A stretch of DNA of 64,000 bases from Salisapilia sapeloensis CBS 127946 (taxonomy: Eukaryota; Protista; Oomycota): assembly GCA_023334545.1 (NCBI GenBank), contig JAADVB010000008.1:96019-160018 (forward strand). The letters are read 5' to 3'. Below are positions 24,710-27,946 of this stretch, piece after piece (position 1 is the first letter of the stretch; each line of letters opens with the position of its first letter). A program made the translations under genes and the position numbers. Below the pieces are notes generated by a model that was not told the DNA's origin, searched no databases, and saw only the letters and a program-made list of their open reading frames with translations.

Positions 24710-26413
24710 ATGAAGTCGAAAGTGAGCAAGAAGCGCACACCTGGAGTGTCGTCTACTACTCATAGTACAGAAATGTACGACTTCATGCGATCCACTACTA
24801 GTACGAACTTTAGCATCCAGTCTCCGGTCACGAATGGTAACGCAAATTCTTCCAACGTGATTATGTACGGGTCCCGTGAGAGTGCTCTTGTATCTCCTCA
24901 AACGATCACGACGAACTTCGTGCAGTCCACATCAGCCATGAAAACCCTTCGTCAGACATTTATAGATGGAAAGACACTACCATTGGAGCACAGGAAGAAA
25001 CTCCTTCGCAACCTTCAGATCATGGTCACGGAAGGACAGCGACAGCTCACAGATGCTATATGGCTCGATTTAAAACGCCATCCTGCAGAAACCTATAGCT
25101 TGGAACTTTCGGCTGTACATGCTGAGATCCAGCTTCACCTTGATCATTTGAACGAATGGGTCAAGCCGAAAGTGATTACGAACTATAACTTTACGACATG
25201 GCCGTCCCAGTCGTATATCGTCACTCAGCCGAGAGGTGTGATCTGTATCCTCGGTGCTTGGCACTTGCCGATCCGTATGATGCTACTGCCACTCATCGCT
25301 GCCTTGAGTGCTGGGAACTGTGCTCTACTCATCTTTTCCGGCGGAGATACTACTAAAAACACGAACGAGGCTCTTGCTTCTCTTCTAGAGCGCTACGTTG
25401 ACCAGCGCTACGTGCGACTTGTTGGAGGCGGTCGAGAGATGGCAACTCATGTGCTATTGCATGAACAGTTCGACCTTGTCTTTGCCTCTGGCGGGCCATT
25501 GATGGGTCGTGTAGTTGCAAGAGCTGCGTCCGAGTCATTGACACCAACGATCTTAGAACTTGGAGGGAAGAACCCAGCAATTGTGACGCATACTTGCAAT
25601 GTCCAAATGGCAGCAAAGAAGATTGCATGGGCATCTTTCTTAAATGCTGGCCAGACGAGTATGCGACCAGACTATGTGCTTGTCGATGCTCTAGTTGGTG
25701 ATAAGTTCACAAAGGCAGTGGAGTCCTGGGTCATGCATTTCTATGGTAGCGATCCGAAGTCGAGCGAAAGCTTTGGTCGACTCGTGAACAAGCGAGCATT
25801 CGACCGGATCGATTCCATCCTGAAGAGCGATCGGCGATGGATTACTTTCGGTGGATACAAGGACGCTCGAGACAAATTCATTTCGCCCACGTTACTACAC
25901 TTTGGTAAGAACCTTCCTGCGTTCGGTACGAGTTCCGCCATGGTTGACGAGATCTTTGGACCGATACTACCCATCGTCTACTACAATCAAGGACACATTG
26001 ACAGTGCCTTGATGTTCGTCTTGCAAAGAACTCGACCTTTAGCTCTATATCTCTTTACACAAGATGAATACGTTCGTCATCGAGTTGAGCAGCGGATGCA
26101 CTCTGGAAGCTTTGTGGTGAACGACTGCATGGCACATACCTTTCATCCGACGCTACCTGTTGGTGGCATTGGTGGCTCGGGTATGGGCAAGTATCAAGGC
26201 AAAGCTGGCTTTGACGCTTTCTCTCACCAGAAGAGTACGTTACGAAAGTCTGAATGGAATGATTTGGAGGCAAAGTATCCTCCGTACACAGACGCAAGTG
26301 AAAGCAAGTTGAAGAGAGCGATGCAACCGTCAAAGCGAACGCATCGAACGGTGGCTGTACTTGGCCTCGTTCTCTTTATCATCATTTTCTTGTTGATCTT
26401 ATCGACCATTTGA
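24710..26413 (+). CDS. ALDH3/fatty-aldehyde dehydrogenase-like protein with C-terminal membrane anchor; catalytic residues substituted
   Basis: ATG at 24710. PRGVICILGAW, LTPTILELGGKNP, DEIFGPILPI, PLALYLF, LPVGGIGGSGMGKYQG and a C-terminal TM (VAVLGLVLFIIIFLLILSTI). The catalytic motif reads NAGQTSMRPDY. Confidence 0.9.
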   Translation: MKSKVSKKRTPGVSSTTHSTEMYDFMRSTTSTNFSIQSPVTNGNANSSNVIMYGSRESALVSPQTITTNFVQSTSAMKTLRQTFIDGKTLPLEHRKKLLRNLQIMVTEGQRQLTDAIWLDLKRHPAETYSLELSAVHAEIQLHLDHLNEWVKPKVITNYNFTTWPSQSYIVTQPRGVICILGAWHLPIRMMLLPLIAALSAGNCALLIFSGGDTTKNTNEALASLLERYVDQRYVRLVGGGREMATHVLLHEQFDLVFASGGPLMGRVVARAASESLTPTILELGGKNPAIVTHTCNVQMAAKKIAWASFLNAGQTSMRPDYVLVDALVGDKFTKAVESWVMHFYGSDPKSSESFGRLVNKRAFDRIDSILKSDRRWITFGGYKDARDKFISPTLLHFGKNLPAFGTSSAMVDEIFGPILPIVYYNQGHIDSALMFVLQRTRPLALYLFTQDEYVRHRVEQRMHSGSFVVNDCMAHTFHPTLPVGGIGGSGMGKYQGKAGFDAFSHQKSTLRKSEWNDLEAKYPPYTDASESKLKRAMQPSKRTHRTVAVLGLVLFIIIFLLILSTI

Positions 26414-26461: not shown

Positions 26462-27946
26462 TTAGTCTCGTAGCTGTCCGATCGGTTTTCCAAGCATTAA
26501 CTGTCATTCACATACCATTAGCTTTTCAATTAGCTTGCTAGTGTTTGTTAAAGTACCTTTTCTCCTGGTTGTGTCGTGAATTGGAAGTTTTTAGGTGCTT
26601 CGAAGACGAGGACGACGGTTGATCCGAGTCGGAACTGTGCCACTTCATCTCCTTTCCCTGTGTCCATCCCACTTCCGTACTCTTTAATGAAACACTTTTT
26701 GTCTTCCGCAGCTTGATCCTGCTCCTTGACATTCGTCAAAAAGTCTGGCTCAGCGGACAAGGTGATGGACCCGACGTTCGTGGCACCGACTGCAGACATA
26801 CTGAACATCCCGTGCTGCCACTTTCCCATCAACACCACTCGTTCGTTTTCGACGAATAAGCTCGGAATGAGCTTGGCTGCTCGAGAGTTGACTGGGAAGA
26901 GGTTACCAGGAAAATGGCGTCGTTCCATCACCTTCCAGTCGATCGGTGAGTGGATACGATGGTAGTCGCCAGGGGCCAAGTAGATGACACACTGGTACAA
27001 AACCTTGTTCGGGTCTTTCGACCGCCATGAAGGAAAGTCTCCAATAAAGTCATCCAGACGATAGCGAGCTCCTTTGATCTGCTCTAGAGTTGCAGTAGGT
27101 GTAGTTTCATCCACGATACCAAAGGATGTGATCACGCCGTCCACAGGAGACGTGAGGACGCGTGGGTTCATCTCGATTGGACGCACGTCGTCCTTTAGTG
27201 GACGAGAGAAGAACTCGGCTAGATTGCGGTACGATTCCAGCGGGTATCTACGCACTTGCGAGTTAAAAGGATAGACACAATGCCAATTAATAGGACGTAC
27301 TTTGCTTCATCGAGGTTACAGTCGTAGACGTAGGTCCAAGCCTTGTACACTGGAGCTCGAAGGAACGTCGGTCTACAAGTTACATATTAATTATTAGATC
27401 TATAGATGGATTGAAACATCTTACAGTTCCTTGTCGTGGACTTTGCCCCAGAGGCGAGAGATGGCTCGATAGGGAAGCAGTTTAATCGATTCCAGCTACC
27501 GCATGTGAGACATTGTGCTCTATGATAAATATGTGGAGAAAGGAGTACTTGTCTTTGGGTTGCCATGCCACTCTCGAATTCAGTTGGCGGTGTAGGAAGC
27601 CTCGTCACTGCCAGTGATGGACCTTCGCGACGGTCATCAGCGGCAATGCTTAGATGATACCATTGCAACGCTGCAATCAGTGCAAATCCACCTGCTGCCG
27701 GCACTTTCCAGCCCATTGGGTTACCCCACCCAGGCGGAACGTCATCCTTTGGGGCTTCATGTTTGGTCTTTTGCTTGCTAGAAAATGAGCGGACTCTGTA
27801 CGACGATCACATCGTGTAGGCGATTAGTTTAAAGATTTAATGTGTTGGAATGATAGATTGCGAATCGAGCATGTAGCATACCTTGATGAACGCGCTGAAA
27901 GTCTGAAAGCGAATCGTGGCGAGGCTCTCGAGGGTGCTGCCAACAT
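26462..27946 (-). CDS. PSD1: Phosphatidylserine decarboxylase, mitochondrial type (6 exons, 394 aa)
   Basis: Exons 27946-27882, 27795-27549, 27495-27425, 27372-27301, 27247-26557, 26500-26462, closing in frame. Arg/Ser-rich presequence; LPYRAISRLWG, SPVDG, YLAPGDYHRIHSP, NERVVL, VGATNVGSI and the self-cleavage motif FRLGSTVVLVF. Confidence 0.92.

Follow-up and report, generated by a model that had tools for sequence, protein, structure and literature searches.

In human FALDH (ALDH3A2), a membrane-anchored class 3 aldehyde dehydrogenase (ALDH), substitution of the catalytic Cys (C241S) or of the oxyanion-hole Asn (N112A) each removes all measurable activity, and a gatekeeper helix has been described for the same enzyme (PMC4109017). 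The oxyanion hole of ALDHs is made up of the Asn side chain and the backbone amide of the Cys, and in the steroid ALDH3 Sad (9NXL) the cavity is enlarged by changes that include Tyr to Ala124 and Phe400 to Ala412 (PMC12410373). ALDH pseudoenzymes as such are already established, ALDH16A1 being a recognised human member that is without catalytic residues and is regarded as binding or regulatory (PMC10650815, PMC8160307). In the literature, nothing was found on a dead membrane-bound ALDH3 of the FALDH type or on any oomycete ALDH pseudoenzyme. Here we describe a tail-anchored ALDH3-like gene in a stretch of 64,000 nucleotides from the oomycete Salisapilia sapeloensis CBS 127946 (contig JAADVB010000008.1, positions 96,019 to 160,018; hereafter the window, with coordinates counted from its first letter). 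Its product is probably a retained, functional ALDH3 pseudoenzyme, namely, a FALDH-like homologue that has lost the capacity for NAD(P)+-dependent aldehyde oxidation, and not a decaying copy.

The gene lies on the forward strand as follows.

24710..26413, + strand: complete coding sequence (CDS) of a tail-anchored ALDH3-like protein; uninterrupted open reading frame (ORF) of 567 aa plus stop, with Pfam, PDB, AlphaFold2 (AF2) and Foldseek matches.

The ORF runs from the first in-frame ATG at 24710 to the stop codon at 26411-26413, and no stops or frameshifts were found across 1.7 kb, as had been stated in an earlier reading of the bare sequence (the first-pass annotation). The protein matched PF00171 (Pfam Aldedh) with an E-value of 8.7e-56 and 189.8 bits against a cut-off of 23, and the alignment, in which residues 74-509 fall on profile positions 32-460 of 461, comprised the whole catalytic core. 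In HMMER matches to PDB sequences, chains of the ALDH3 class scored between 1e-88 and 5e-94, and the other ALDH classes scored 1e-29 or weaker; the closest solved structures were S. aureus AldH (6k0z), human FALDH/ALDH3A2 (4qgk), and rat and human ALDH3A1. An AF2 model built from 121 sequences (pLDDT 88.3, pTM 0.85) was superimposed by Foldseek on FALDH 4qgk with a TMt of 0.94-0.96, a root-mean-square deviation of 1.7 A and 36% identity. At least 500 ALDH chains in the PDB were matched by this model (best TMt 0.96), with the ALDH3 class again ahead of the others. The protein is thus a class 3 member of the ALDH superfamily by both sequence and fold.

To examine the active site, residue states were scored in an alignment (A2) of the window protein with its 120 best database homologues, to which the counts below refer.

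25658..25660, + strand: Ser317 (AGT) at the position of the catalytic Cys (FALDH Cys241, by HMMER alignment to 4qgk); Cys in 119/120 and Gly in 1/120.
25262..25267, + strand: His185-Leu186 in place of the oxyanion-hole Asn and the pocket Tyr (FALDH N112-Y113); Asn in 120/120 and Tyr in 120/120.
25331..25333, + strand: Ile208 in place of the cofactor-ribose Lys of KPSE; Lys in 113/120 and Arg in 7/120, the latter being oomycete relatives.
26159..26161, + strand: Val484 in L-P-V-G-G, where homologues have a pocket Phe; Phe in 119/120.
25487..25507, + strand: GxxxxG cofactor loop S260-G-G-P-L-M-G266; both glycines kept, Thr replaced by Ser.
25556..25558, + strand: Glu283 of ELGGK (FALDH Glu207), retained; codon GAA, Glu in 120/120.
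25949..25951, + strand: Glu414 of EIFGP (FALDH Glu331), retained; codon GAG, Glu in 120/120.

The two central claims of the first-pass annotation, loss of the catalytic Cys in NAGQT-S-MRPDY and of the oxyanion Asn in W-H-L-P (His185, CAC, 25262-25264; followed by Leu186, 25265-25267), were both upheld by this alignment, as was the integrity of ELGGK and EIFGP. Its third active-site change, the reading FASGG in the NAD-binding loop, turned out to be mild. The motif aligns to F-[FY]-T-G-[SNG]; the Thr that is replaced by Ser260 (25487-25489) is indeed invariant (120/120), but Gly261 (120/120) and Gly266 (116/120) are kept, Gly at 262 occurs in 26/120 homologues, and relatives of the same clade read TGG. 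A stronger third change had been overlooked, namely that of Lys/Arg to Ile208, which closes the beta-strand 204-208 in the AF2 model. Also overlooked were Y186L and F484V, by which two pocket-lining aromatics are swapped for smaller residues; Val484 aligns with ALDH3A1 position 401 (chain 10pq_A) and is Ala in an approximately 95% identical relative (V484A, run X3, described below). Besides the two glutamates and the two glycines, Phe416 of EIFGP, Tyr495 and Asn471 are retained. The window protein departs at 10 of the 91 columns with at least 95% conservation, the joint maximum in the alignment. Since Asn is found in all and Cys in all but one of the closest homologues, the states at Ser317 and His185, as aligned, exceed ordinary variation within the family.

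The window protein carries the equivalent of the inactivating C241S change outright, has His, not Ala, at the N112 position, and has also lost the basic residue that binds the ribose. Because the corresponding FALDH mutants are inactive and the cofactor contact at Ile208 is lost, there is a strong inference, by analogy with the closest solved eukaryotic homologue, that ALDH activity is lost. Among the features of a catalytically competent ALDH, three (Cys, Asn and the basic ribose residue) are missing, and the glutamates and the GxxxxG loop are present.

Sequencing runs were compared in the form of Logan contigs, which give neither expression level nor strand. Run X1, the probable source run, was identical over the whole stretch at a depth of 41.5 with no variant. 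Run X2 came from the same organism in a separate study, and its contigs were identical over 24803-25020 (apart from one differing letter), 25185-25449 and 25716-26308; the second of these, with 0 differences, spans the codons of His185 and Ile208. Runs X3 and X7 were samples labelled as another organism that hold a relative of about 95% identity. X3 contig 9 (25086-25301) differed at 8 positions, all of which were listed and none of which fell in the His185 codon; His185 is thus present in the relative too, and the substitution predates the split from it. X3 contig 10 (25427-25692) spans the Ser317 codon and showed no difference there among the 9 of 15 listed, one A>T of X3 lying outside the listed differences and being unplaced; Ser at position 317 of the relative is therefore probable. 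As to the reads at 25658 itself, the first-pass base call agrees with X1 and with this X3 contig as far as listed, and the X2 contigs skip the position.

One X7 contig skips 26501-26556, an interval bounded on the minus strand by GT..AG, which corresponds to an intron of the neighbouring phosphatidylserine decarboxylase (PSD) gene, and X7 hence holds RNA. Contigs of X7 and X3 cover the ALDH-like ORF, none from X2, X3 or X7 lies on the upstream spacer, and in the downstream spacer only the spliced PSD contig of X7 approaches the ALDH stop, to a distance of about 60 nt. Because the RNA-holding run has contigs on the ORF but none on the spacers, the ALDH-like gene is transcribed.

Within the ORF, the 34 listed X3 differences comprised 28 synonymous and 6 non-synonymous ones, the latter all conservative (V151I, E252D, G406S, I419L, M435T and V484A). 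With Nei-Gojobori site counts, the differences listed gave a dS of ~0.13, a dN of ~0.008 and a dN/dS of ~0.06 (binomial p 5e-13 versus neutrality). A like pattern was seen in the adjacent PSD gene, where 5 of the 6 listed differences were at third positions. The ALDH-like gene is under strong purifying selection, and the constraint on it is on a par with that on its housekeeping neighbour. Transcription and strong purifying selection argue for a functional pseudoenzyme and against a decaying copy. The attributes of a pseudoenzyme were found together: homology to an enzyme family with essential residues replaced, in a gene that is intact, expressed and under purifying selection. The first-pass proposal of a protein dead as an aldehyde dehydrogenase yet maintained accordingly gains support from the FALDH mutants, the intact ORF, the contigs of the RNA-holding run and the low dN/dS. 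The protein probably does a job different from aldehyde oxidation.

The two ends of the protein were predicted to be organised as follows.

24710..24934, + strand: N-terminal Ser/Thr-rich extension, residues 1-75; predicted disordered, with no counterpart in relatives.
26291..26323, + strand: short helix, residues 528-538, ahead of the anchor; AF2 secondary structure.
26336..26407, + strand: C-terminal hydrophobic helix, residues 543-566, the tail anchor; sequence read directly, AF2 helix 543-566.

Ser and Thr make up 37% of residues 1-75 versus 13% of the remaining protein, residues 1-52 have a pLDDT below 50, and no relative in alignment A1 has a counterpart of the extension. As the first X2 contig begins at 24803, at least part of the extension is present in assembled contigs, the start codon being predicted. 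The protein ends in VAVLGLVLFIIIFLLILSTI, the final 20 residues of which are hydrophobic, and the modelled helix stops one residue short of the stop. This layout is that of a predicted tail anchor, as in ALDH3A2, so that the anchor recognised in the first-pass annotation is likewise intact; a similar hydrophobic tail was seen in the relatives P0001-P0008. Helix 528-538 appears in the model to occupy the place of the FALDH gatekeeper helix.

The best public relatives were 41-45% identical: N0F65_006708 of Lagenidium giganteum (P0001, 45%), the metagenomic P0002, and P0003-P0005, of which P0003 and P0005 are from Aphanomyces stellatus and P0004 from Achlya hypogyna. In a maximum-likelihood tree the window protein grouped with P0001 and P0002 (SH-aLRT 87) as sister to the saprolegnian proteins, all six together receiving 96. 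Because this grouping mirrors the species relationships, the gene is read as an apparent orthologue of the Lagenidium enzyme and not as an old extra paralogue. No synteny with Lagenidium was seen, a MIP/kinesin gene and not PSD lying downstream of P0001, and the putative orthology to P0001 is one of tree, not of position. At 1.12 substitutions per site, the terminal branch of the window protein has roughly double the length of the branches of its nearest relatives (0.47 and 0.65). Cys, Asn, Tyr, Arg and Phe are all still present at the five changed positions in P0001-P0003, and the losses are thus specific to the lineage of the window. Of the combination that the first-pass annotation had named as contrary to its own reading, orthologues with Cys and Asn and a copy under relaxed selection, Cys and Asn were found in the relatives P0001-P0003 and relaxed selection was not seen.

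The neighbouring PSD gene was 62-64% identical to those of Globisporangium and Phytophthora, 56% to that of Albugo and 54-57% to those of Aphanomyces. To judge by sequence, the host is an oomycete without a close annotated relative, and consequently no close orthologue turned up. When the 88 aa surrounding the Ser site were used as query, only 3 candidates and one 55% match were obtained, which were uninformative on residue 317 of the relative. In JGI metagenomes, 107 pattern matches to the whole protein were obtained, none of which tblastn confirmed.

Taken together, the fold and the dimer-type architecture are preserved, and so are the two glutamates of the catalytic site, the glycines of the Rossmann motif, the helix at the gatekeeper position and the membrane anchor. 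The protein has lost the thiol nucleophile (to Ser), the Asn that forms half of the oxyanion hole (to His) and, to Ile, its basic contact with the adenosine ribose of the cofactor, and two aromatics at the bottom of the substrate funnel have given way to smaller aliphatic residues. We propose that the protein would sit on an endomembrane with its funnel toward the bilayer, like FALDH, and that the widened hydrophobic funnel may bind a long-chain aldehyde or another lipid without turnover; the argument for widening draws on Sad, in which changes at the position equivalent to Leu186 and at one probably equivalent to Val484 are among those behind the larger cavity. The protein would then act by binding, sequestering or scaffolding, and the disordered Ser/Thr-rich N-terminus could offer a point of regulation or interaction. 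The first-pass annotation had suggested aldehyde or lipid binding, sensing or regulation of active ALDH subunits as possible roles.

Several observations weigh against a retained pseudoenzyme. Glu283, Glu414, Tyr495, Asn471 and the residues on the nicotinamide side are invariant, which fits continued chemistry as well as it fits structural constraint. No close orthologue from another species, by which the age of the changes could be judged, was found in these searches. The Ser317 codon is covered at 100% identity by X1 only, and its presence in the relative is probable, not proven. The estimate of selection is drawn from a shallow divergence (dS ~0.13) and from 34 listed of 55 X3 differences.

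The main alternative is a re-tooled enzyme, in which Ser317 would be the nucleophile, His185, at the old site of the oxyanion Asn, the base and Glu283 or Glu414 the third member, and which would catalyze NAD-independent chemistry on a lipid at the membrane, for instance the hydrolysis of an ester or thioester. The changes of Cys to Ser and Asn to His are chemically complementary, and the side chains at these positions adjoin in ALDH active sites. In ALDHs this very site already supports a cofactor-free esterase side activity (PMC8160307), and the missing basic contact to the ribose is in keeping with chemistry that does without the cofactor. The two glutamates and the majority of the remaining active-site residues have moreover stayed invariant despite the long branch, in a gene under strong purifying selection. 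Against this, the Ser-His geometry is presumed, not taken from coordinates, no precedent for a Ser-His hydrolase on the ALDH fold was found in the literature, and a hydrolase would need the oxyanion hole, half of which goes with the replaced Asn. We regard such an enzyme as unlikely, though it fares best among the alternatives. Improbable, too, is its more specific form, in which the scaffold would have become a serine hydrolase or acyl-transfer enzyme that is anchored in the membrane and independent of the cofactor, its funnel being widened by Y186L and F484V to admit a lipid of greater bulk, perhaps a sterol or sterol ester. If true, such a conversion would add a new catalytic solution to those of the ALDH fold.

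That the protein is still an aldehyde dehydrogenase, working through the Ser or some other residue, we consider very unlikely. All the other hallmark residues are present, and rare ALDH3-like bacterial genes with a natural Cys to Ser change exist, one of them, from a Treponema metagenome-assembled genome (MAG), being otherwise intact. However, in FALDH C241S alone and N112A alone leave no measurable activity, and here both positions are changed, together with the Lys/Arg. The bacterial genes were retrieved with a degenerate DNA pattern, NAGQT-S(AGY)-xx-PDY, which was limited to AGY serine codons and gives a rough figure for rarity: 0 matches were found in the JGI metagenome contigs and 2 in 185,579 prokaryotic species genomes. 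The Treponema sp. gene (L005:~1-1400, - strand) is ALDH3-like with NAGQT-S and otherwise canonical (WNYP, ELGGK, EIFGP and PFGG), and the other, from a Gammaproteobacteria MAG (L004:4577-6007, - strand), is ALDH3-like with NAGQT-S and degenerate, ELGGK reading ALDRK and PFGG reading TFDH. The deposited S. aureus AldH structures 6k0z and 6k10, the top sequence match, also read NAGQTS at the catalytic position, which may be an engineered change.

The long terminal branch and the 10 deviations among the 91 most conserved columns might suggest a recently inactivated gene on its way to a pseudogene. This is contradicted by the lack of stops and frameshifts over 1.7 kb, by a dN/dS of ~0.06 with only conservative replacements and by the presence of the gene in RNA-derived contigs. 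His185 is in addition common to a relative at a dS of ~0.13, so that the loss predates the split and constraint has continued since, and recent decay thus seems most doubtful. That the catalytic codons are artefacts of sequencing or assembly is scarcely credible, even with 25658-25660 covered at full identity by X1 alone, since X1 shows no variant at its depth of 41.5, His185 and Ile208 were confirmed in the second study of the same organism and His185 in the diverged relative as well, and the separate non-conservative replacements of invariant residues, at least five in number, lie beyond one base error, as the first-pass annotation had argued from fewer changes.

Further observations concern the clade and the locus. 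In seven of the eight tail-anchored relatives (P0001-P0007), R-[LV]-[PA]-x-x-x stands in the place of KPSE and two residues are inserted (window residues 205-215), and cofactor handling in the tail-anchored clade may differ even in members that appear to be active. Achlya P0004 has Gly (GGC) at the catalytic Cys, in NAGQTG, as verified in DNA (JNBR01000537.1, L002:1792-1809; gene 914-2556); it lies directly downstream of another ALDH3 copy (fragment 41-433), the visible C-terminal part of which is canonical, and it looks like an independent second pseudoenzyme in the clade. Aphanomyces stellatus P0005 keeps Cys and Asn and reads LPHGNV---GLG for LPFGGVGxSGMG, with a three-residue deletion (A1 columns ~495-505); it departs at 10 conserved columns, equal to the window protein. 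By tblastn of the protein, no second copy was found within the 64-kb window. Two antisense ORFs, 25353-25634 and 26055-26333, were rejected as genes, being short, unsupported and inside the well-supported CDS. The convergent PSD gene has a 56-nt GT..AG intron (26501-26556, minus strand) near its 3' end; since the spliced X7 contig shows this intron, the PSD ORF at 26548-27255 extends into a short last exon below 26500, the end of which lies some 50 nt from the ALDH stop.

These results bear on how such genes are read. Cys241 and Asn112 are indispensable by FALDH mutagenesis (the Asn as N112A, not as His), yet a gene that has lost both counterparts is constrained. Automatic annotation would call it an aldehyde dehydrogenase, and metabolic reconstructions would wrongly credit the organism with fatty-aldehyde oxidation. 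Because a second Cys loss (Achlya) and a third, degenerate paralogue (P0005) occur in the same clade, non-catalytic use of the scaffold may be recurrent. The complementary pair of Cys to Ser and Asn to His also makes a change of chemistry testable by simple assays.

Compared with human FALDH/ALDH3A2 (4QGK), the window protein shares the class 3 fold, the C-terminal transmembrane tail, a helix at the gatekeeper position and the equivalents of Glu207, Glu331 and Tyr410. It differs in the replacement of Cys241 by Ser, Asn112 by His and Tyr113 by Leu, in Ile for the Lys of KPSE, in a two-residue loop insertion and in an extra disordered N-terminus of 75 residues. With the oomycete tail-anchored clade (P0001-P0005) it has in common the C-terminal anchor, the Arg after the catalytic residue (xRPDY) and, at the KPSE site of other ALDH3s, the loop R-L-P-x-x-D-T with two inserted residues; unlike P0001-P0003 it is without their Cys, Asn, Tyr, Arg and Phe, and its branch is the longest. 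Achlya P0004 resembles it in clade, tail anchor, independent loss of the catalytic Cys and a long branch (0.86), but keeps Asn, Tyr, Arg and Phe and belongs to a tandem pair, in contrast to the single copy in the window.

ALDH16A1 likewise has an ALDH fold with catalytic residues missing, but it belongs to another ALDH family with another architecture and is not tail-anchored like FALDH. It is described as lacking the entire catalytic triad, whereas the window protein keeps both glutamates and has Ser and His for Cys and Asn. Sad, finally, is bacterial, soluble and enzymatically active, with its Cys252 and Asn123 in place, and is in these respects unlike the window protein. The two are alike in having less bulk at the residue after the oxyanion Asn (Ala124 in Sad, Leu186 in the window protein) and a reduced Phe of L-P-F-G-G (Ala412 versus Val484, which is Ala in the close relative), the equivalence of the first pair of positions being certain and that of the second probable.

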